Positions 2,820-46,202 of a stretch of 64,000 nt of DNA are shown in pieces. The notes beneath the pieces were generated by a model that was not told the origin of the DNA, searched no databases, and saw only the letters and a program-made list of their open reading frames with translations. Origin of the DNA: Hyalangium minutum (GTDB taxonomy: Bacteria; Myxococcota; Myxococcia; Myxococcales; Myxococcaceae); NCBI RefSeq assembly GCF_000737315.1, contig NZ_JMCB01000008.1, forward strand, positions 496,001-560,000. The letters run 5' to 3'. The translations under genes and the position numbers were made by a program. Each line of letters starts with the position of its first letter. The first letter of the stretch is position 1.

Positions 2820-3548
2820 ATGCGCCCACACTTCACTCTTTCTTCGCTGTTCGGACGAGCCCTCCCTGCGCTGCTGTGCGCGGCCACCCTGGTGGCGTGC
2901 GAGCCGGGAGACGAGCTCTCACGGTTCTCGGGCCGAGAACTGCGGGCAAGCGTGAACTCCTTCGAGGGCGGGCTCTTGGCGATACTCGACCGGTATGAGC
3001 CCGAGAGAGGCGGCTGCCTCCAGCTGCACCCCGACGTGGTGGCCACCTTCGATGGGGTTCCCCTCGAAACCTCCCCCGGCGGCCCCGTCGTCGAGCGCTG
3101 CGAGTTTCCCAATGATCCACCCTTCTTCACCGGCAAGCTGGACACCGCGCTGTTCTTCGATGCGCCGAGGAACGCGGTGATGGAGATCCGGGCCGGGGAT
3201 GAGGCCATCATCGCGGAGTTCACGAACTTCTTCGGGCGGCACACCTTCACGCTGATCGAACCCGCTCCCGTGGTGAAGCCCGGCGAGGAGATCTTCCTGG
3301 AGTGGGACCCGCCCACGGATGACCTGTCCCAGCTCGAGGGCGTCAGCATGAACGGAACCGTCATCCCGGCAGCGCTGGAGGGGCACGGAGTGCGATTCAC
3401 CGTCCCGGCGAATTTCCCCACGGGCCGGTTCAACGTGGGCCACGTCGGACAGGTCACCATCCCCGCCGCGCGCTGCGAGGGCGTAGCCCGCTGCCGATCC
3501 TTCCCGTGGCCCCTCTACCGGTTCGCGCAGCTGAACATCCAGCCCTGA
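2820..3548 (+). CDS. Hypothetical lipoprotein
   Basis: Lipobox LVAC after a hydrophobic stretch (ALLCAATLVAC); beta-rich body. Confidence 0.75.
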   Translation: MRPHFTLSSLFGRALPALLCAATLVACEPGDELSRFSGRELRASVNSFEGGLLAILDRYEPERGGCLQLHPDVVATFDGVPLETSPGGPVVERCEFPNDPPFFTGKLDTALFFDAPRNAVMEIRAGDEAIIAEFTNFFGRHTFTLIEPAPVVKPGEEIFLEWDPPTDDLSQLEGVSMNGTVIPAALEGHGVRFTVPANFPTGRFNVGHVGQVTIPAARCEGVARCRSFPWPLYRFAQLNIQP

Positions 3549-3605
3549 AGCCTCTCTCTGCCCTGAGCGAAGAGGAGCGCCAGTACCGGCGCGCAAGTCG
3601 AACAG

Positions 3606-5045
3606 CTAAGCGGCACAGAAGGCCAACAGAGCGCCTGCGGCGGTGGCCACCACGTTGACGGTGTCGTTGCCCAGCCAGGACACGCCTCGGAGGGCCCGGG
3701 TGGGCTGACCGCAGTGGTGCACGCGGCGCTCGGTCTCCCGGGCACAGGCCTCGCACCAGCGCACATCCTGCACCGTGGCCCCCAGGAAGCTGTCCACCAG
3801 CGAGCCCACCACCCCCGCCAGCACGAGCCAGGGCAGGAACTGCCACGGGACGCCCGTGACCAGCGCGAGGCTCCCCACGAAGGCAGCCCCGGCGGTGGAG
3901 GCCAGCAGCCCCATGCCCGACACGGCGCCCGAGGTGCCAGGAGCCACCGGCCGCAGGGTGGTGATGCTCCGGGGATTGGAGCGCGAGAGCACTCCCAGCT
4001 CCGTGGCCCAGGTGTCCGCGTTGGCGGCAACCAGTGCTCCCAGCATCGCCAGCAGGAAGCGCGAGTCCCCCGTGAGGCCCAGGAGCACGGCGGCCAGTGC
4101 GGCCACCCCGCCGTTGGCCAGCGCCTGCCCGAAGTCTCGTGTCCCCGTCTTGGCGTACTCGGCCTCCATGGGAGCCTTCCGGTCCCGGAAGGCCTTGGAG
4201 AGCGCGCTCGAGGAGAAGAAGAAGCCGAGCAGGGCCGCCGTCCCCACCGCACCCGCCAGCCCGAACACCGGGGCTCCGACGACAATGGCGCCCAGCACAC
4301 CGCTGGGACTCAGCGAGCCCCGGAACCAGGCGGCCACACCAATGATCAGCGCCACCCCCGCGCCCAGGCCCAGGCCCGGAGCGAAGGAGGCGGGAGTCCA
4401 GCCGAGCACGGCCAGGGCGCTCAGCGGCACCCAGAGGTTGTCCCGTCCCCGGATACCGAGAGCCTCGGCGCAGGTGGCCACCACGGCGCACAGCAGGGCC
4501 AGCGGCACTCGGGGCAGCTCAGGCGCCAGGCCCGGCAGCCACGTGAGCGCGGCCAGCACGGACAGGAAGGTGCCCACGAGCATGGCCAGCGAACCCTCCA
4601 GGCTCTTGCGCTCCCCTGCCAGCGTCTCATAGCGGTGGCGTCCGAAGCGCCGGCCTACCAGCGACGCCAGCGCATCCCCCACCACCATCGCCAGCACGCT
4701 GCCCACTGCCACCGCGGGCCGGTCCCATGCCAGCCAGAGGCACGCCGAGAAGCTGAGCGCGTACCAGACCGTCCCCAGGTTGTCGGGCTCGGTCTCCACC
4801 GCCTTCAGCAGGCGCTTGCGGTGGATGACCCAGTTGGCCACCGCCGCCGTCATCGAGGGAACCACCGCCCACTCCCGGTGCTCGAACAACTTCAACGCGG
4901 CGAAGATCCACAGGCCCACGCCCACGTGGATGAACTTGCGCGAGAACTCCCGGGAGGCCCCCCGCCGCGCCAACACCTCGCCCACCAGGACGCACGCGCC
5001 CACGTAGGCATAGGACAAGAGGAGTGCCTTGAGGTCCTGACTCAT
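3606..5045 (-). CDS. Phytol/dolichol-kinase-like (VTE5/SEC59-type) domain fused to a DUF92 (VTE6/TMEM19-like) domain
   Basis: N-half has SRKFIHVGVG, GDALASLVGRRFG, KSLEGS and DNLWVP; C-half has QALANGG, ANADTWATELG and GTSGAVS. Highly hydrophobic. Confidence 0.85.
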   Translation of the reverse strand: MSQDLKALLLSYAYVGACVLVGEVLARRGASREFSRKFIHVGVGLWIFAALKLFEHREWAVVPSMTAAVANWVIHRKRLLKAVETEPDNLGTVWYALSFSACLWLAWDRPAVAVGSVLAMVVGDALASLVGRRFGRHRYETLAGERKSLEGSLAMLVGTFLSVLAALTWLPGLAPELPRVPLALLCAVVATCAEALGIRGRDNLWVPLSALAVLGWTPASFAPGLGLGAGVALIIGVAAWFRGSLSPSGVLGAIVVGAPVFGLAGAVGTAALLGFFFSSSALSKAFRDRKAPMEAEYAKTGTRDFGQALANGGVAALAAVLLGLTGDSRFLLAMLGALVAANADTWATELGVLSRSNPRSITTLRPVAPGTSGAVSGMGLLASTAGAAFVGSLALVTGVPWQFLPWLVLAGVVGSLVDSFLGATVQDVRWCEACARETERRVHHCGQPTRALRGVSWLGNDTVNVVATAAGALLAFCAA

Positions 5046-5283: not shown

Positions 5284-5532
5284 TCACAAGCCGCCCGGGG
5301 CAACGACTCCTTCGACGATCTCCTCTTCCTCGCGCTCTTCCTCTTCCTCCTCCTCGCGCGCGCGGATCTCGCCGCCGATGTCGCTCTCCTCGGCTTCCTC
5401 GCGCCGTGCGCGGCGCCGTGCGAAAGGCTCCTCCGCCTGTTCGCCATGCGGCCTGCCGTGCTCGCCCTGCTCGAACTCGGCCGACTTGTGTCCCATCGTG
5501 CTCTCGGGTTGCTCCTGAAGATCCGTCCTCAT
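5284..5532 (-). CDS. Small Glu-rich hypothetical protein (~82 aa)
   Basis: Poly-Glu run EEEEEEEREEEE; plausible codon usage; start uncertain. Confidence 0.45.
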   Translation of the reverse strand: MRTDLQEQPESTMGHKSAEFEQGEHGRPHGEQAEEPFARRRARREEAEESDIGGEIRAREEEEEEEREEEEIVEGVVAPGGL

Positions 5533-5640
5533 GGAGGAACGGTGGGGACGGGCCGTTGGCTGGACAAGCTCCCCAAACTGACATTCTTGTCATCTTCGCG
5601 TCAGCTTCGCGCCCGCCCTGCTCACCCAGAATTCCGGGCC

Positions 5641-20245: not shown

Positions 20246-21661
20246 ATGCCGAGTGCCTCCTCGCCCCCATCGCTTCACCCCGCTCTGCTCCCACGGGGTA
20301 CCGCCATCGGGCCTTGGCGCGTGGTGGACTGGGTCAACCGGGGCGTCAACGGCGCTGTCTACCGCGCCGTCCGCATCGGACAGGAGCACCTGCTTCCCGT
20401 CGCCCTCAAGCGCGCCCTGCTCGCGGAGGATCCTCGCTTCGAGCGCGAGCGGGAGCTGCTCTCGCGCACGTTGCATCCGCACATCCCCCGCCTGGTGGAC
20501 TCCGGCTACTGGGTGAGCCCCAGCGGCGCGCGCCATCCTTTCGTCGCCATGGAGTGGATCGATGGCGTGCCCTTGTACGACTGGGCACGGATGTTCCTTC
20601 CCTCGGCGGCCCAGCAGTTGCGGCTGCTGGCCCAGGTGGCCTTCACCCTTCAGTATCTCCACGCTCAGGATGCACTCCACCGGGACTTGAAGGGCGGAAA
20701 CATCCTGGTGCGCCGCTCCGACAGCCGTCTGTTCGTCACCGACTTCGGCTCGGGCATCTACCCGGACGCGGCCACGCTGACACCGCAGCAGTTGCCCCCA
20801 GGCACTCCGGCCTACCGCTCTCCCGAGGCCTGGCTGTTCAGCCAACGAAACCGGAACACCTCGGAGCGCTACCGGGCCGGGCCCGCGGATGATGTGTTCG
20901 CCCTGGGCGTCACCGCCTGCGTGCTCGCCACCGGCAAGTACCCGGAGATGGGTGAGCTCCGGAAGGATAAGCAGGGACATTGGTCCCTGGACTCGCTGAT
21001 GCTGCCTCGGGCCTTGTTCTCGGCCCGGGTGCCGCCGCAGCAGCGCGACTTGATTCTGCGCATGCTCTCCATCCTCCCCGAGGAGCGCGACACCGCCGGG
21101 GAGCTGGCCCCTGCACTGGAGCGGGCGGCAGACTCTCTCTCCCATCCCTGCCCGCGTCCCAGCGCTTCGGAGACAGAGCGAGCGCCTTCGCACTCACGGC
21201 CGCCCTGGCTCGTGCTGGCGGTGGCCGCAGGCACGCTGGCGTCGTGGGCGGCATGGCTGACGTGGGCGGCCTTTCTCCCCGCGCGGGAAGAGGCCCCGCG
21301 TGTCTCGCAAGCCACCGCCCCGGCCGAGAGCAAGCCCTCACCCGAGGCGGGGCCTGTGGGGCTTGGCGAGGATGCGGCTTCCGCCCCACCTCCGAGCCCT
21401 GCCCTGCCCTCCACCTCCACGCCCTCGATCTCGGACAGTCCTCCCGATCCGTATGAGGGCCAGGCGCAGCCCGACAAGAAAGGCCGGTGTCCTCACCTTC
21501 AGCAGGTCATTCTCAACGGCGCGTGCTGGGCTCGTCTGGCGCTGACCCCAGAGAAGTGCGAGACCAGCGGCGGCGAGATGTACCAGGGGACCTGCCACGT
21601 GCCGATCTTCCCTCGCGGCGTCAAACGCCCCAACACCTCCGGCCACGAGCATCCCCCATAG
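20246..21661 (+). CDS. Membrane Ser/Thr protein kinase with Pro-rich linker and Cys-rich extracytoplasmic C-domain
   Basis: HRDLKGGNI, DFGSG, GTPAYRSPE and DVFALG; TM segment PWLVLAVAAG; terminal C...CW...C...Y.G.C. Confidence 0.88.
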   Translation: MPSASSPPSLHPALLPRGTAIGPWRVVDWVNRGVNGAVYRAVRIGQEHLLPVALKRALLAEDPRFERERELLSRTLHPHIPRLVDSGYWVSPSGARHPFVAMEWIDGVPLYDWARMFLPSAAQQLRLLAQVAFTLQYLHAQDALHRDLKGGNILVRRSDSRLFVTDFGSGIYPDAATLTPQQLPPGTPAYRSPEAWLFSQRNRNTSERYRAGPADDVFALGVTACVLATGKYPEMGELRKDKQGHWSLDSLMLPRALFSARVPPQQRDLILRMLSILPEERDTAGELAPALERAADSLSHPCPRPSASETERAPSHSRPPWLVLAVAAGTLASWAAWLTWAAFLPAREEAPRVSQATAPAESKPSPEAGPVGLGEDAASAPPPSPALPSTSTPSISDSPPDPYEGQAQPDKKGRCPHLQQVILNGACWARLALTPEKCETSGGEMYQGTCHVPIFPRGVKRPNTSGHEHPP

Positions 21662-21800
21662 GGGTCCTGAAGCCACAGATCTCGGCGAGCCGGGCTTTGT
21701 GCTTCAGAACGTGTTGGGTTCTATGAAAGAGCCGAACCAGGGCGATTCGTGCGCAACCCCCTACGGGGACCCTGCGATAACTCCGAACAGTGAAATCCGG

Positions 21801-22352
21801 ATGGGAAGCCCCTTGGCACTGGCTCGTGATGCTTGGCGCTCTGCCTTGGGTGTCGCCTTAAGCGCGAGCCTGATGGGTGCCATGGGGTGCAGTGCGACAC
21901 ACGCCGCCCACCAGAGCACAGGCGAGTCAGGCTCGACGGCTGGCACCGCTGAGCGCGGCGATGCCCTCGCGCAGCGCGGGGACTCCCTCGCGCAAGCCGC
22001 AACGTGCGGCCCAACAGACAGCACCATCTCGTGCTGCCTCAAGCAGCATCCAGGCGTCTACGAGCGCTGCGGAGCGCTGGACCCCACGAAGGTCCCTACG
22101 CGAGCCCCCACCAAAGCCTCCCAGACGGATCCGCCTCCCCTTCCGCCCCCTACGAGCGCGGCCCCTCCCAACCGGAGAAAAAGGGAAGAGGAGTGCCGTC
22201 AATACTGGCTCCAGTGCATCGCGATGGGAGGCGAGTACGAGAAGCGCGGGCAGCACGGCCAGACGGTCTGCCAATCTTGCTACGAGACCTGTAAGGGAAC
22301 AGGCTCCTGGCCTTCGGAGGTCAACGGCCTCGAGTGTCTCGGAGGCTACTAG
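21801..22352 (+). CDS. Cys-rich lipoprotein, copy 1 (candidate toxin/effector)
   Basis: Lipobox AMGC; CGPTDSTISCCLKQHPG; C-terminal C3W2C..GGEYEKRGQHG..C..C...C..WP.EVN..ECLGGY. Paralog at 44945. Start uncertain (21723 is possible). Confidence 0.75.
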   Translation: MGSPLALARDAWRSALGVALSASLMGAMGCSATHAAHQSTGESGSTAGTAERGDALAQRGDSLAQAATCGPTDSTISCCLKQHPGVYERCGALDPTKVPTRAPTKASQTDPPPLPPPTSAAPPNRRKREEECRQYWLQCIAMGGEYEKRGQHGQTVCQSCYETCKGTGSWPSEVNGLECLGGY

Positions 22353-22855
22353 CTGTGTCGCGCTCGCGCCGCGAATGGTGGAACACGGTTGCAGAGGCCC
22401 GCGAGTGGCTCTGCCTCGGAATGGCTTTCGGTGAAGTGCCTTTTGACGCCTACGTGGGCGCGCTCGTGGATCTGGAGCGGCAGTTTGCACGAGAGGCGCG
22501 CACTCCCTCCGAACGCCTGCACCTCCAGCGTCTGACGGCATTGAATGCCGTGCAAGCAGCGTTCGATCAGGCTCGTCCATGGAAGGACTTTGGCCCATGG
22601 CTGCGCAGGCTCCAGCGGTTGGGATTTCCCAACCTGTGGAACCGCCATCATGTCGCGTGCCTCTACGTGCAGTCCTTGAACAACTTCCCGGACCGGGCCC
22701 GAGACGCCTTTGCGATGTTGGCGGACACGGAGCAAAGGGTGTTAAGGCTCCACAAGGATCGTCGTTCGCAGCAACAGATGCTTGACGGGATCGACCATGC
22801 CCGACGCGAAGCCGCGAGCTACGGGATTCAACCTCCTGAGGAGTTGAAGCGGTAA
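22334..22855 (+). CDS. Helical basic partner protein, copy 1 (candidate immunity; 173 aa)
   Basis: Overlaps the upstream gene by 19 nt; closely similar to 45496..46017 (EVPFDAYV, FAREARTP, RPWKDFGPWLRRL, QQMLDGI). Confidence 0.8.
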   Translation: MSRRLLAVSRSRREWWNTVAEAREWLCLGMAFGEVPFDAYVGALVDLERQFAREARTPSERLHLQRLTALNAVQAAFDQARPWKDFGPWLRRLQRLGFPNLWNRHHVACLYVQSLNNFPDRARDAFAMLADTEQRVLRLHKDRRSQQQMLDGIDHARREAASYGIQPPEELKR

Positions 22856-22862
22856 AACTGGA

Positions 22863-23906
22863 ATGCACTCGCGCGTGGCATTTACCTCCGACGACACCCG
22901 GGACTGGGGCCCGTCTGTGGCGGGTCCGGGCATGCTGCTGGACATTCCCCGCGAGGGACGCTGGCTGCAGCGGCCCTCCCTGCACTTCGAGGTGGCCGCT
23001 CCGTACCGGCTGCGTCTGACGAGTGGCGGGCAGCCGCTGCTCTGGGTGTGCATCGACAGCTATTGGGATCAATGTGGCTTCCTCCGGGGCACCGCCAGCG
23101 CGCCCTGGGGATTGCCTCCGCTGCGGGCCGCCGAGCTCCGCGAGGTGACCCATGAGCCAGGAACCGACCGCTGGTGGGAGGCCTGGACGTGGCGCTTGGG
23201 CCGAGCGCTCACCGAGTCGCTCCATCCCCTGCTCTACGCGGGCCGCTGGTGCCTGCGGCCTGTCCGGGCCATCGACGTGCGCCAGGCCTCGCGCTACCCC
23301 ATCAGCCCCATGGAGTGGGGGTTCGGCGAGGAGATCGCTCCACCCCACTCCCTCGAAGGCCTCTCGCGCTTCGAGACGTTCTGGACCGAGGACTGGGCCA
23401 CGGAGTCCGTGCTCTCAGGCGCGGTGCTCCCGCTGCGAGCCGCTTCCCCGGAAGACGACGGCCGGGTGAAGAGCTGGCGCAAGCACGCTCGGGACCGGAC
23501 GTTGCCACCGGCGCTGCTGCTCTATGTGGACCTCCTGGCGAAGTGGCTGGTGCTGGATGGGCACGATCGCCTGCAGGCGGCTCTCCTCGAAGGGGTGACG
23601 CCGCCCCTGCTGGGGCTCTGGCCGGTCGTCGAGCGGGCGGACCCCTCCCGCGCCGTGTCGCAACAGGGGGCGCTGATTGCCGCCGAGTTCCAGCTGCGCG
23701 CGGGGGAGACTCCGCAGCGCATCGACCAGGTCAACCGCATGCTGGTGCGCAACTTCGCGGGGCCGCGGCGCGGCACCGTCACCCGTGCCTGGCCGCTGCG
23801 GGGTGGCCTCGAGGTGTGGAGGGCCGAGGTGCTGGCCTGGCGCCGGTGGAACACCTTCCCAACAGCCCCCCAGCCCTGGGAGTGGTTTGTGGGCACTACT
23901 TCTTGA
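22863..23906 (+). CDS. Trp-rich hypothetical protein with a ParB/Srx-like LVLDGHDR motif
   Basis: 347-aa ORF starting 7 nt after the previous gene; motif KWLVLDGHDRLQAALLEG. Confidence 0.7.
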   Translation: MHSRVAFTSDDTRDWGPSVAGPGMLLDIPREGRWLQRPSLHFEVAAPYRLRLTSGGQPLLWVCIDSYWDQCGFLRGTASAPWGLPPLRAAELREVTHEPGTDRWWEAWTWRLGRALTESLHPLLYAGRWCLRPVRAIDVRQASRYPISPMEWGFGEEIAPPHSLEGLSRFETFWTEDWATESVLSGAVLPLRAASPEDDGRVKSWRKHARDRTLPPALLLYVDLLAKWLVLDGHDRLQAALLEGVTPPLLGLWPVVERADPSRAVSQQGALIAAEFQLRAGETPQRIDQVNRMLVRNFAGPRRGTVTRAWPLRGGLEVWRAEVLAWRRWNTFPTAPQPWEWFVGTTS

Positions 23907-24441
23907 GAGGCAGTTCCAGCTTCGCCGCGATCTCGAACCATCCGCTGTCGATCACCTCGGCCGAGATCTCTCGCGTGGCGCAGTCCACCCGCAGGCGCAC
24001 GAAGTCCGCGCCGTCGTCTCGCTCCAGGTTGGCGTAGAAGACCAGCTCCTGAGGAGCCCGTCGCGGCGCCTCCCAGCTCGCCAGCCCGCGCTCCCCGATG
24101 GTGCCGCTGTGGATCACCTCCGGCCCCGGCTGATCCAACGTGAGGAAGTCCAGATCCTCCTTGGTGCGAGTCACCTTCGCCCCGGTCGCCAGCTCCACCA
24201 GCTCCATCACCTGCTGGAAGCTCGCCTCCGAATCCAGTTCCGCCTGAGTTCCTCGCAGCGCTTCGCTCAACTCCTCGATGGAGCGCGGCGCTGGCAGATA
24301 CCGCGCTCCGAGCTCCACCCAGACCTGCCAGCGGACCCAGGCCAGCCGCACGCCGGCCCGCTCGGCCCAGCGCTCCGCCCCAATTTCCTCGAGCCTCGCG
24401 CGCAGTGCTGGCTCTGCCTCGTGGAGTTCGTGCTCGCTCAT
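23896..24441 (-). CDS. Hypothetical protein (~181 aa)
   Basis: GC3-biased from MSEHELHEAEP onward; the upstream part of the track ORF overlaps the next gene and is not coding-like. Confidence 0.6.
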   Translation of the reverse strand: MSEHELHEAEPALRARLEEIGAERWAERAGVRLAWVRWQVWVELGARYLPAPRSIEELSEALRGTQAELDSEASFQQVMELVELATGAKVTRTKEDLDFLTLDQPGPEVIHSGTIGERGLASWEAPRRAPQELVFYANLERDDGADFVRLRVDCATREISAEVIDSGWFEIAAKLELPLKK

Positions 24442-24589
24442 CGCTGCCGATGCTACCCCTGGCCTGTTACGCCTGGGAGCTCCCCCCGCTCTTTGGGCTG
24501 CATGGCAGAAGCCTGACGGGGAGACGTGGGCACGCGCCACTTCCGGCGGTGGGAAAAAGTCGGCGCTCGACCATGTTGGCGTTACAGCT

Positions 24590-25984
24590 ATGCGCAAACA
24601 CTCACTGATCATTTCCAGTCTTCTGGCGGTGTGGATCGTCCTGGCATGCAAGGACTCGGCAGCATCGGTGGAGCGGCCTTCCGCCGTAAGCGCGAGCGAG
24701 CTGCCCGCGGAGGACTCGGGGCCGGCACTGCTGCGCCAGCCGTACCTGCAGAGCGTGGGGCAGACGAGCGCCATCGTGGCGTTCCGGACCGGCGAGTCGT
24801 GCACGCCCCTGGTGCGCTATGGCCAAGGGACAAACGTGTCGCAGACAGCGACGGCCAACGAGGCGGGCTGGCGGCACGCGGTGCAGCTCACGGACCTGAC
24901 GCCGGGGCAGACGTACAGCTACGTGGTGGAGGCGTGTGGCTCGGTCACCGGCGTGCGGCAGTTCCGCACCGCGACTCCCGCGACGGCGACGAGCCTCACG
25001 TTCACGGCGATGGGAGACTTCGGCACGGGCGACGAGACGCAGCAGGGGGTGCTATCGCGGCTCGCGCAGCCGGGCAACGCCGGCGAGCTGCTGCTGACGC
25101 TGGGAGACAACGCCTACTCCAAGGGCACCGAGCAGGAATTCCAGGACCGGATGTTCACCCCCATGGCGGCGGTGCTGCGGCAGGTGCCCCTGTTCCCCAG
25201 CCTGGGCAATCACGAGTATGGGACGGACCAGGGCCAGCCGTACCTGGACAACTTCTACCTGCCGGCCAACAACTCGGAGCACTCCGAGCGCTACTACTCG
25301 TTCGACTGGGGCCCGGTGCACTTCGTGGCGCTGGACTCGAGCTGCGCCATTGGCAGGGCCTCGCCGGATCGCTGCACGCTGGAGGCGCAGAAGCGCTGGG
25401 TGGAGCAGGATCTGGCCGCCTCGCAACGGCCGTGGAAGGTGGTCTTCTTCCACCACCCCTCCTGGTCCAGCGGCAAGCACGGCTCGGAGCTGACGATGCG
25501 GAACGAGTTTGGTCCCCTCTTCGAGCAGCACGGGGTGGACCTGGTGCTCACGGGGCATGACCACAACTACGAGCGCACCCAGCCGATGTGGGGCGGTGAC
25601 GTGGCACCCGCGGGGACTCGAGGCATCACCTACGTAGTGGTGGGCAGCGGCGGCGCGAAACTGCGGCGCTTCCCGGAAGAAGCGCCGAGTTGGACGGCGT
25701 ACCGCAACAACACGGACACGGGCTACCTGGAGGTGGCGGTGAATGGTGGCACGCTGACCGCCAAGTTCTACAACCCCAACGGCGAGGTGAAGGACAGCTT
25801 CACGCTGACGAAGACGCTGCCGGCCTCGGCGGGGCGCCTCGAGGCGAGCCCGGCCCCGGCGCTGGAGACGCCTCCGGGACCGGTGGACGATCCGGCGCAC
25901 CCGCCCGCCTGGCTGCACTTCGAAAAGCCCCTGCCTCCCGCGAGCCCGGAGTCGATGGAGGACGACGACGAGCCGTCGCCCTGA
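24590..25984 (+). CDS. Purple-acid-phosphatase-like metallophosphoesterase lipoprotein (FN3-like plus calcineurin-like domain)
   Basis: Lipobox VLAC; GDFG, GDNAY, GNHEY, HHP and GHDH metal-binding motifs. Confidence 0.9.
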   Translation: MRKHSLIISSLLAVWIVLACKDSAASVERPSAVSASELPAEDSGPALLRQPYLQSVGQTSAIVAFRTGESCTPLVRYGQGTNVSQTATANEAGWRHAVQLTDLTPGQTYSYVVEACGSVTGVRQFRTATPATATSLTFTAMGDFGTGDETQQGVLSRLAQPGNAGELLLTLGDNAYSKGTEQEFQDRMFTPMAAVLRQVPLFPSLGNHEYGTDQGQPYLDNFYLPANNSEHSERYYSFDWGPVHFVALDSSCAIGRASPDRCTLEAQKRWVEQDLAASQRPWKVVFFHHPSWSSGKHGSELTMRNEFGPLFEQHGVDLVLTGHDHNYERTQPMWGGDVAPAGTRGITYVVVGSGGAKLRRFPEEAPSWTAYRNNTDTGYLEVAVNGGTLTAKFYNPNGEVKDSFTLTKTLPASAGRLEASPAPALETPPGPVDDPAHPPAWLHFEKPLPPASPESMEDDDEPSP

Positions 25985-44595: not shown

Positions 44596-44651
44596 CCCGG
44601 ATGGCGCTCACGCCAGCTCGAACACCACGTCCTGTGCGCCTTCCCACAGCT

Positions 44652-44696
44652 CCAGCTCGGCTCAGGGCGCGCGCGTCGGACAGCTCCAGCTCGGGC
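44652..44696 (+). repeat. Left copy of a ~45-bp direct repeat flanking cassette copy 2
   Basis: Core gggcgcgcgcg(t/g)cggacagctccagctcgggc is shared with 46042..46088. Confidence 0.8.
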
Positions 44697-44944
44697 GCCG
44701 CGTACAGGTCCACCTCGGCACGGGGGACATACCGTAGGACTCTCCAAGTCCTATTCAACTACCCGCCCTCTGCGAGCATGAACTTTCCAAGTCGGTGCGT
44801 GCCAGAAGACTTCGTAGGTCATAGGCTGGGATGGCATGGGACTTGTTAGGTCCTAAAATCTCGTCTGACGTATTGGTGTGTGCGCAACCTGTCCCGGGGA
44901 ACTTGCGATAACTCCGATCACTCGGGCTGTGCCCGGGAGGCCCC

Positions 44945-45514
44945 ATGACCCATCACGCCAACTCTTGGCGCCTTAGGTGTGCTCTCCTGATCTGCGCCAG
45001 CCTGTTAGCCGGTGTGGGCTGTAGTTCGACGCAAGCTGCCCATCAGGGCACCGGCGGATCGGGCTCTGCGGATGGGGCTGCCGCATACGTGCAGGAAACC
45101 GCGCAGCGCGGGGATTCCATCGCGCAGGCTGCCCCCGCCCAATGCGGCCCGTTTGACAGCACCGTTTCCTGCTGCCTTAAGCAGCACCCGGGCGAGTTCG
45201 GACGCTGCGGGGCTATAGACCCTGGGAAGGCCCCCACGCGGGCACCCAAGCAAGCGCCCCGGACGGATCCGAATCCGTACCCGCCCCCCACTACGGATCC
45301 GTACCCGCCCCCCACGGATGCAGCCCCTCCCGACAGACGGAAGAGGGATCAGCAATGCCGCGAGTATTGGAATCAGTGCATCGCGCTCGGAGGCGAGTAC
45401 GAGAAGCGCGGGCAGCATGGCCGCACCATCTGCGCGTCCTGCTACGACCAGTGCATGGGGCTGGGCTACTGGCCCAAAGAGGTCAACGACTTTGAATGTC
45501 TCGGAGGCTTCTAG
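44945..45514 (+). CDS. Cys-rich lipoprotein, copy 2 (candidate toxin/effector)
   Basis: ggagg RBS, lipobox GVGC, and the same ten-Cys pattern as 21801..22352. Confidence 0.8.
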   Translation: MTHHANSWRLRCALLICASLLAGVGCSSTQAAHQGTGGSGSADGAAAYVQETAQRGDSIAQAAPAQCGPFDSTVSCCLKQHPGEFGRCGAIDPGKAPTRAPKQAPRTDPNPYPPPTTDPYPPPTDAAPPDRRKRDQQCREYWNQCIALGGEYEKRGQHGRTICASCYDQCMGLGYWPKEVNDFECLGGF

Positions 45515-46017
45515 CCGTGGCCCTCCTTCGTTGGGAATGGTGGAACAAGGTTGCCGAGGAACGCCAGTGGCTCACCCTCGGAATGAGCTTCGCAGAAGTG
45601 CCTTTTGACGCCTACGTGGCCGCGCTCAAGGATCTAGAGCGACAGTTTGCACGAGAGGCGCGAACTCCTGGCGAACGCCTGCACCTCAAGCGCCTGACGG
45701 CAGAGGACGCATTGAACGCGGCATTCAGGATGGATCGCCCATGGAAAGACTTTGGCCCGTGGCTGCGCAGGCTCAAACGGCTGGGCTTCCCGAATCTCTG
45801 GAGCCGCTATCAGATCTCGACGATCTATGTGCAGTCCTTGCACAACTTCCCGGAGCAAACCCGAGACGCTTTTGAGATGTTGGCGGACACAAGGCGCAGG
45901 GTCTTGAGGCGACGCAAGGATCGTTCTTCGCGCCAACAGATGCTTGACGGGATCGAGCACGCCCGACGCGAGGCAGCACAATACGGCATCCAGCCGCCCG
46001 CGAAATCGAAGCGGTAG
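45496..46017 (+). CDS. Helical basic partner protein, copy 2 (candidate immunity; 173 aa)
   Basis: Same 19-nt overlap and same length as 22334..22855. Confidence 0.8.
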   Translation: MSRRLLAVALLRWEWWNKVAEERQWLTLGMSFAEVPFDAYVAALKDLERQFAREARTPGERLHLKRLTAEDALNAAFRMDRPWKDFGPWLRRLKRLGFPNLWSRYQISTIYVQSLHNFPEQTRDAFEMLADTRRRVLRRRKDRSSRQQMLDGIEHARREAAQYGIQPPAKSKR

Positions 46018-46041
46018 GGCACGGGAAACGCCCGCACAATC

Positions 46042-46088
46042 CCAGCTCGGCCCCATGGGCGCGCGCGGCGGACAGCTCCAGCTCGGGC
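46042..46088 (+). repeat. Right copy of the direct repeat flanking cassette copy 2
   Basis: See 44652..44696. Confidence 0.8.
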
Positions 46089-46202
46089 CGGTGGCGCTCG
46101 CCAGGACGGCAGCCATCGTCGCCGCTCCGGTCGCGGGAGGGACGGCCCTTCGCCTCATCGACTCGGGCCGCCCCCCGCACAGATCTCCGGCCCCCTTCTC
46201 GT

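Follow-up and report, generated by a model that had tools for sequence, protein, structure and literature searches.

Two A–B cassettes and the proteins they encode

We analysed a stretch of 64,000 nucleotides (nt) of the Hyalangium minutum genome (contig NZ_JMCB01000008.1, positions 496,001 to 560,000; hereafter the window), which contains two paralogous two-gene cassettes on the + strand, at 21801–22855 and 44945–46017. The listing of the open reading frames (ORFs) of the window agrees with the preliminary description of this DNA, in which the cassette had been reported twice at these coordinates. In each cassette gene A encodes a Cys-rich lipoprotein and gene B, immediately downstream, a cytoplasmic, basic protein of helical repeats resembling tetratricopeptide repeats (TPRs). 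Gene A1 (21801–22352, +) encodes 183 amino acids (aa) counted from its ATG; the start position homologous to those of its relatives is the TTG at 21813. Gene A2 (44945–45514, +) encodes 189 aa, and both B1 (22355–22855, +) and B2 (45517–46017, +) encode 166 aa. The A proteins are 59 % identical (E = 1e-69) and the B proteins 74 % (E = 2e-90). Similarity between the two cassettes at the DNA level extends from about 55 nt upstream of the start of A to the stop of B, where it ends abruptly.

Based on an alignment of 29 members, the regions of A are found in a constant order: a signal peptide with a lipobox, a Gly/Ser/Ala-rich stretch, a motif of four cysteines (4-Cys motif), a Pro-rich spacer which varies in length, and a C-terminal domain (CT). 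In A1 the signal peptide is encoded at 21801–21887, the lipobox Cys at 21888–21890, the 4-Cys motif at 22005–22070 and CT at 22176–22349; the corresponding positions in A2 are 44945–45019, 45020–45022, 45143–45208 and 45338–45511. The lipobox reads …G-C-S/T and is recognised by a PROSITE-like rule in A1, A2 and 23 of 30 family members; the others have G-P-A-G-C or are truncated at the N-terminus. From this region we infer export of A through Sec and lipidation of its lipobox Cys, and the Ser at position +2 makes the outer membrane its probable destination. The 4-Cys motif (C-x9-CC-LKQHPG-x4-C) is about 22 aa long. Mature A comprises only ~155–165 aa, and the ~100 aa from the lipobox to CT consist largely of low-complexity sequence and the 4-Cys motif. 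In the AlphaFold2 model of A2, for which the family alignment was the input, the predicted local distance difference test score (pLDDT) is below 50 at residues 22–64 and 100–126, so that the tether is predicted to be disordered. The mature protein holds 10 Cys besides the lipobox Cys, in line with its earlier characterisation as a ten-Cys lipoprotein.

CT, a C-terminal domain of 55 aa, contains six invariant Cys in the pattern C-x6-C … C-x2-C-x3-C … C, both helices of the model having Cys seven positions apart. Its AlphaFold2 model (pLDDT ~90) consists of a helix (131–147), a loop, a second helix (162–173) and a short hairpin, which suggests a helical hairpin stapled by three disulfides. No other part of A is as well conserved as CT, which is 69 % identical between the window copies; that the C-terminus is conserved rather than polymorphic had already been noted. 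Two motifs had been described as invariant: GGEYEKRGQHG is indeed identical in both copies, which end in ECLGGY and ECLGGF, but the invariance holds among close relatives only, and distant members share no more than the Cys scaffold and G-x-WP.

Concerning B, the AlphaFold2 model (mean pLDDT 94.3) has seven helices arranged as a TPR-like solenoid. The protein contains no transmembrane or hydrophobic segment (maximum Kyte-Doolittle mean over 19 residues 1.3), its isoelectric point lies between 9.8 and 10.7, and its earlier assignment as a cytoplasmic helical partner fits both the sequence and the predicted helical-repeat fold. No DNA-binding, helix-turn-helix (HTH) or enzymatic output domain was found in B, and 166 aa are too few to hold one. 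In a Foldseek search of the PDB the matches of B were designed repeat proteins, PCI/TPR proteins, 14-3-3, PlcR and PrgX, all with E > 0.02; those to PlcR, PrgX and 14-3-3 are weak, all with E > 0.3. The B profile also weakly matches the TPR protein P0197, and B has no match to a Pfam TPR family. As only generic Foldseek matches were obtained, B appears to be a generic binding scaffold without a specific relative.

The two genes are closely joined. In 10 of 10 Archangiaceae loci, namely the window copies and eight related loci, B starts with a GTG exactly 2 nt past the stop of A, and the consensus of the junction in these loci is TGY-CTC-GGA-GGN-NNN-TAG-NN-GTG. The terminal Gly-Gly codons of A form a GGAGG located 9 nt upstream of this GTG. 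The Shine-Dalgarno sequence of B1 is found at 22341–22345 (+), inside the terminal Gly-Gly codons of A1 and 9 nt before the GTG at 22355, and that of B2 at 45503–45507 (+), inside the last codons of A2. The 2-nt gap and the ribosome-binding site within A indicate that A and B are translationally coupled without overlapping. A start at 22334 would give B1 173 aa; such upstream RTG codons are a by-product of the Glu-Cys codons of A, have no ribosome-binding site and are missing in the divergent locus L007. Among the B homologues 80 of 89 are 150–180 aa long, mostly 166 aa, and their N-terminus aligns with residue 8 of the 173-aa ORF. The conserved 19-nt overlap and the partner length of 173 aa given in the preliminary description are both artefacts of the longest-ORF rule and have to be replaced by the start at the GTG after the stop of A. 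Conservation of the ECLGG motif may be owed in part to the ribosome-binding site of B.

Both genes evolve as coding sequences: in nine pairwise comparisons the ratio of nonsynonymous to synonymous substitution rates (dN/dS) is 0.2–0.5 for the N-terminal part of A, for CT and for B, and 0.2–0.3 for A1 against its relatives. The ten mature Cys positions, the lipobox and CT are kept over 30 or more sequences. Gene A is, however, not called in the NCBI annotations of six genomes (loci L004, L005, L007, L009, L010 and L011), and other annotations, including the window's own record, call it only as a 3' stub of 42–95 aa. As gene A is missing or truncated in every NCBI genome annotation examined, surveys of annotated proteomes miss the family.

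Relatives of B and the carriers of CT

Scans of Pfam, NCBIfam and PADLOC and searches with PDB sequence profiles gave nothing for A, B or CT, and Foldseek gave zero matches for A in the PDB, which bears out the earlier remark that the domains were not recognisable. The family is so far unannotated and unclassified. Its close homologues are all labelled ‘hypothetical’, with Stigmatella, Hyalangium and Cystobacter as the named hosts, and the genomes of Stigmatella sp. ncwal1 and Hyalangium rubrum each contain at least four paralogues. With the single exception of L006, the gene directly before B in the Archangiaceae loci examined is A. A genome scan for related loci returned three loci, and a scan of a single metagenome returned one B-like locus, in which CT is absent. 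A profile search with CT in a set of 5.8 billion proteins retrieved only truncated calls of gene A and no new architectures.

More distant relatives were found with a profile of 81 B sequences, which retrieved 122 representatives at E < 1e-3 among 1.84 billion cluster representatives; nearly all are 150–180 aa long and come from metagenomes or metagenome-assembled genomes of Myxococcota. The gene preceding the B relative differs between loci. The relative P0194 (2e-8; locus L012) is preceded by an Rhs protein of 1869 aa whose C-terminal tip is CT, and P0146 (4e-28; L013) by a lipoprotein of only 95 aa, which consists of a signal peptide, a lipobox and CT. A full A-type lipoprotein precedes P0250 (L016). 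In L014 P0160 (1e-17) follows a cas3-like gene whose reading frame continues into a CT without the first Cys. The marginal or distant B-like genes of L015 and L017 have no CT.

The Rhs protein of L012 was characterised further. It matches PF05593 (RHS_repeat) with 33.9 bits (cut-off 22) as well as TIGR01643, and the Rhs-associated core TIGR03696 with 42.2 bits (cut-off 32.5), at residues 1145–1218 of the 1330 residues covered by the analysed sequence. The tail of 112 aa after the core contains a hydrophobic stretch, a linker rich in Cys, Gly and Asn, and finally CT, with the pattern C-x6-C-x17-C-x2-C-x3-C-x3-G-x-WP-x8-C. The B-like gene overlaps the 3' end of the Rhs gene. A hidden Markov model (HMM) of CT, built from Archangiaceae CT sequences alone, matches the last ~52 aa of this Rhs protein with E = 2.4e-5 among 3175 ORFs. 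The same model scores 30.1 bits for the L012 (Rhs) tail, 29.6 bits for L013, 36.6 bits for L014 and 49.2 bits for L016, compared with 12.7 bits for the best of 2000 composition-preserving shuffles (0 of 2000 reach the observed scores). In all four loci the match is the end of the ORF immediately before B.

CT is therefore carried by an Rhs tip (L012), by a minimal lipoprotein (L013) and by full lipoproteins (the window, L001–L011 with the exception of L006, which has a lone B, and L016). As judged from the compared sequences, CT together with B is shown to be an evolutionary unit which stands behind varied carriers. A metagenomic homologue of A, P0116, has a lipobox, a tether and CT and no N-terminal 4-Cys motif; with the 95-aa protein of L013, it indicates that this motif is dispensable for the architecture.

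A B or B-like gene is adjacent to CT in 16 of the 19 cassettes examined, and the orphans and remnants are L005, L006 and L014. In L006 (Cystobacter fuscus) a lone B lies 148 nt after an unrelated gene. In L005 an intact A–B cassette is arranged head-to-head with a second intact B in inverted orientation (3497-4410, minus strand). All that stands before this second B is a CT stub of the final ~35 aa and a piece of a third B gene, an arrangement which shows recombination among paralogous cassettes. The cas3-like gene of L014 (2764-4998) encodes Cas3_HD, DEAD and Cas3 C-terminal domains which end at residue 651 of 744, B begins 2 nt past its stop, and a resolvase gene and an AAA ATPase gene are its neighbours. 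We set aside a Cas3–CT fusion as a real architecture, given where the Cas3 domains end and the loss of the first Cys of CT; this locus is probably a remnant of a rearrangement.

Flanking DNA and neighbouring genes

The two cassettes of the window lie in unrelated contexts, as the preliminary description had stated. Cassette 1 is flanked by a Ser/Thr kinase gene (20246–21661) and an orphan ORF of 347 aa without a family match, whereas the neighbours of cassette 2 encode a LysR regulator and, convergently, an aldo-keto reductase. The GC content at third codon positions (GC3) is 0.72–0.75 in the cassettes compared with 0.81–0.86 in the neighbouring genes; the overall GC content of the window is 66.7 %. 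The 347-aa ORF (22863-23906, +) begins 8 nt past the stop of B1 and is followed by a convergent ORF of 302 aa (23896-24804, minus strand). Neither matches Pfam or NCBIfam, and the 347-aa ORF has no match in PADLOC. We rejected the 347-aa ORF as a third gene of the module, since neither ORF adjoins any other cassette examined. A consensus scan detected a terminator-like hairpin between the kinase gene and cassette 1 (21681–21694, +), which suggests that A1 and B1 form a transcription unit apart from the kinase gene.

A conserved element of 38 nt, GTGCGCAACC-N14-TGCGATAACTCCGA, is located upstream of cassette 1 (21749–21786, +) and again upstream of cassette 2 (44880–44917, +). It is also common to L004 (~4360-4397) and L009 (~5394-5431), lies 15–30 nt before the start codon of A and holds an imperfect inverted repeat (TGCGCAA / TTGCGAT). 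An RNA structure in this element was rejected based on RNAalifold, which found no compensatory pairs; the element may be a promoter, an operator or part of the 5' untranslated region. Upstream of A2 there is a sigma-70-like promoter match, ATGGCA-17-TAAAAT (44831–44859, +), which is a consensus match only and lies in a region partly conserved with cassette 1.

Cassette 2 is bracketed by GC-rich repeats of ~35 nt, present as an upstream array at 44645–44720 (+) and as a downstream copy at 46035–46090 (+). The 32-nt core of the repeat (GGACAGCTCCAGCTCGG) in the downstream copy is identical to 44665–44696 of the upstream array at 31 of 32 positions, with zero chance matches expected, and is found nowhere else in the window. 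Cassette 2 shares 92.6 % DNA identity over 44826–46094 with L004 of Stigmatella sp. ncwal1, where the flanking genes differ and the cassette is likewise bracketed by repeat arrays (at 4140-4320 and 5500-5620). The identity, the differing flanks and the shared bracket together point to relocation of a unit of about 1.4 kb, and the repeats may be sites of recombination or mobility. The possibility that repeats of 54 nt in the flanks are a target-site duplication in an interrupted gene was set aside: the flanks are short arrays of the GC-rich repeat, and minus-strand ORFs across them have low GC3.

Ser/Thr kinase genes are found within 4 kb of a cassette in 6 of 18 loci (window 20246-21661, L010 4025-5398, L013 4699-7887, L003 8670-10023, L005 8668-10029 and L007 6508-7911) and border the cassette immediately at window cassette 1, L010 and L013. 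The window kinase has a transmembrane helix and a periplasmic tail with four Cys, and several of the other kinases are homologous to it over their full length (38–57 % identity). The kinase is not conserved beside the closest cassette (L009), and for this reason, together with the terminator-like hairpin before A1, a functional link was set aside. Kinase genes are dense in myxobacterial genomes, and their proximity to the cassettes may be due to chance.

Interpretation and relation to known systems

The finding of one CT on several carriers, with an adjacent partner gene and with intact partners where the effector is broken or absent, is the signature of polymorphic toxin/immunity systems. The tip of an Rhs protein is cargo by construction, and on this basis CT may be regarded as an effector that is delivered and B as the protein giving immunity to it. 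We accordingly propose, with a probability of about one half, that genes A and B together form an effector/immunity module like those of polymorphic toxins and represent a new family. The earlier suggestion of a new toxin/immunity family is supported in part: CT on an Rhs tip followed by a B-like gene, CT behind a bare lipobox, the remnants with orphan B genes or CT stubs and the lack of a known family all speak for it.

According to this proposal CT would be displayed by the outer-membrane lipoprotein A on a flexible tether, which would comprise the disordered stretch, the 4-Cys motif as a mini-module and the Pro-rich spacer. B would be made from the mRNA of A by translational coupling and would stay in the cytoplasm as a basic binding scaffold. 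CT would be delivered as the effector, and in kin cells B would bind and neutralise the cognate CT. Several diverged cassettes per genome could serve as compatibility markers, the two cassettes of the window being two diverged alleles. Concerning delivery of the lipoprotein form, the lipobox, the disorder after it and the presence of traAB in the host genera make outer-membrane exchange a candidate route; by analogy, a TraAB-dependent route would be the most plausible one. This is the route of SitA/SitI, the myxobacterial lipoprotein toxin–immunity systems (PMC5562445, PMC8546572), and Stigmatella, Hyalangium and Cystobacter are genera with traAB alleles (PMC6372800). The least supported step of the proposal is the activity of CT. 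As CT has no conserved polar catalytic residue, stoichiometric binding of a target or an action on the membrane is likelier than catalysis, and CT may act at the membrane since it follows a membrane anchor in both forms (the hydrophobic helix of the Rhs protein and the lipid of A).

Several observations weigh against this proposal. The conserved residues of CT are the Cys scaffold, one Gly and a Trp-Pro pair, with none of a catalytic type, and the searches made with CT matched neither a nuclease nor any other toxin family; it shows no toxin fold and no catalytic motif that could be recognised. Hypervariable tips are absent: the A-type lipoproteins found all end in a CT of one family, which varies less than the region N-terminal to it. 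With dN/dS at 0.2–0.5 there is no gene-wide positive selection, and A has diverged further than B, an odd pattern if B is an immunity protein. The combination of a disulfide-rich extracytoplasmic effector and a cytoplasmic immunity protein is topologically awkward. The fusion of CT to an Rhs protein is represented by one example only, a scan of viral contigs found no copies of the cassette, and all loci were retrieved via B, which places any A without B outside the reach of the analysis.

Alternatively, A and B could be a non-toxic surface signal or adhesion pair, akin to the signal/receptor pair which the preliminary description had named as an option. A would then be a tethered, Cys-stapled ligand presented by cells or passed between them, and B a cytoplasmic TPR-like adaptor or receptor feeding Ser/Thr-kinase signalling. 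The conserved, non-polymorphic CT without catalytic residues would suit such a pair, as would the generic peptide- or protein-binding fold of B with its weak likeness to PlcR, PrgX and 14-3-3 and the kinase genes near a third of the loci (6 of 18). We nevertheless consider it rather unlikely: Rhs cages deliver toxic cargo and not signals, orphan B genes stay intact at loci with a broken or missing A, an output domain for DNA binding or catalysis is lacking in B, and the kinase is neither kept beside the L009 cassette nor, given the hairpin, joined to A1. In kinase-dense genomes its proximity may be fortuitous. A bolder variant, in which CT would not be a poison but a contact-delivered identity signal, a disulfide-stapled miniprotein passed on with lipoproteins in outer-membrane exchange (or by Rhs in other lineages) and read by the cytoplasmic B of the recipient, as a Gram-negative counterpart of peptide/TPR quorum sensing which possibly feeds the neighbouring kinases, seems to us doubtful to a still greater degree. 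We hold in similarly low regard the idea that B is a cytoplasmic biogenesis factor for A, which would keep the Cys-rich precursor competent for export or regulate the expression of A. The strict 1:1 translational coupling with its 2-nt spacing and the location of B in the cytoplasm while A is exported are what such a factor would lead one to expect; Sec-dependent lipoproteins, however, normally need no private chaperones, B is kept without a functional A in L006 and in the inverted copy of L005, and a partner downstream of the C-terminus of an Rhs protein is in the position of an immunity gene, Rhs chaperone genes being usually upstream.

That the pair is a divergent, true member of SitA/SitI has in its favour the lipobox, the disorder after it, the coupled downstream gene, several copies per genome and the traAB-carrying host genera, yet it is highly improbable, as a mature A of ~155–165 aa leaves no space for an escort domain of ~375 aa, CT is a conserved Cys-rich domain of 55 aa and not a polymorphic nuclease, and no NCBIfam or Pfam model fits A or B. 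Gene A might also be a spurious ORF in high-GC DNA with B alone being real, as its omission from six genome annotations and the stubs of 42–95 aa in others could imply. The pattern of conservation already refutes this: the Cys positions, the lipobox and CT are maintained over 30 or more sequences with dN/dS of 0.2–0.5, the CT HMM matches exactly upstream of B in distant lineages, and CT is modelled with a pLDDT of ~90.

If the effector/immunity proposal is true, the pair would be a new family in the myxobacterial kin-discrimination repertoire, unlike the known Sit toxins in being very small and escort-less, with a Cys-stapled and apparently non-enzymatic tip which is also used as Rhs cargo. 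It would raise the questions of what a disulfide-rich domain of 55 aa targets and how a cytoplasmic protein protects against it.

Disulfide-stapled helical hairpins such as CHCH twin-Cx9C domains and plant alpha-hairpinins offer a structural analogy: two antiparallel helices have Cys spaced to lie on one face, as would the C-x6-C on both helices of CT. The Cys spacing of CT is different, its third Cys pair is predicted to tie on a C-terminal hairpin, and there is no sequence or Foldseek match to these domains. B resembles the RRNPP receptors PlcR and PrgX in being a small cytoplasmic TPR-like solenoid encoded beside the gene of a secreted product; the matches are weak, however (E = 0.4, TM-score 0.42–0.47), and B lacks an HTH or other output domain. 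To our knowledge, the RRNPP family occurs in Firmicutes only.

SitA has a type II signal sequence with a lipobox, followed by a disordered region (PMC8546572, PMC5562445). The A–B pair shares with SitA/SitI the lipobox, the disorder after it, a partner gene immediately 3' in the operon and several diverged copies; its named hosts belong to traAB-carrying genera of Cystobacterineae, Sit systems being known from species with traAB only. It also resembles SitA4, SitA6 and SitA7 in that a single toxin-domain family is found in all members, and not a modular set. The differences concern the domains: in place of the ~375-aa escort domain of SitA, A has the ~22-aa 4-Cys motif and low-complexity linkers, and whereas the CTs of Sit proteins are nucleases, that of A has 55 aa, is predicted to be Cys-stapled and is apparently non-enzymatic. 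Furthermore, the pair has no sitB-like gene, was not seen on prophage-like or viral contigs and has no sequence-family match. The likeness to SitAI proposed in the preliminary description thus holds for the layout (lipobox, disorder and coupled downstream gene) and not for membership, as both the escort domain and a polymorphic nuclease C-terminus are lacking. By the features described and the lack of a family-model match, the pair is placed outside SitA/SitI on sequence grounds.

A further comparison is with polymorphic toxin systems. As far as that concept, from work of 2012, is represented in the citing paper (PMC8546572), the pair agrees with it in having one C-terminal domain on varied trafficking modules (the Rhs core in L012 and lipoproteins elsewhere), a partner gene which abuts or overlaps the 3' end, orphan partners and displaced 3' stubs. 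The carrier in the window differs in being a minimal lipoprotein and not an Rhs, CdiA or type VI secretion system protein, there is one conserved CT instead of a set of many interchangeable tips, and the Tox, Ntox and Imm families of Pfam include neither CT nor B. By its encoded architecture the pair corresponds to a polymorphic-toxin module as generally defined, so far as the same source conveys it, except for the hypervariability of the tip. It is probably a minimal, escort-less lipoprotein effector with a Cys-stapled and probably non-enzymatic tip, accompanied by a TPR-like partner.

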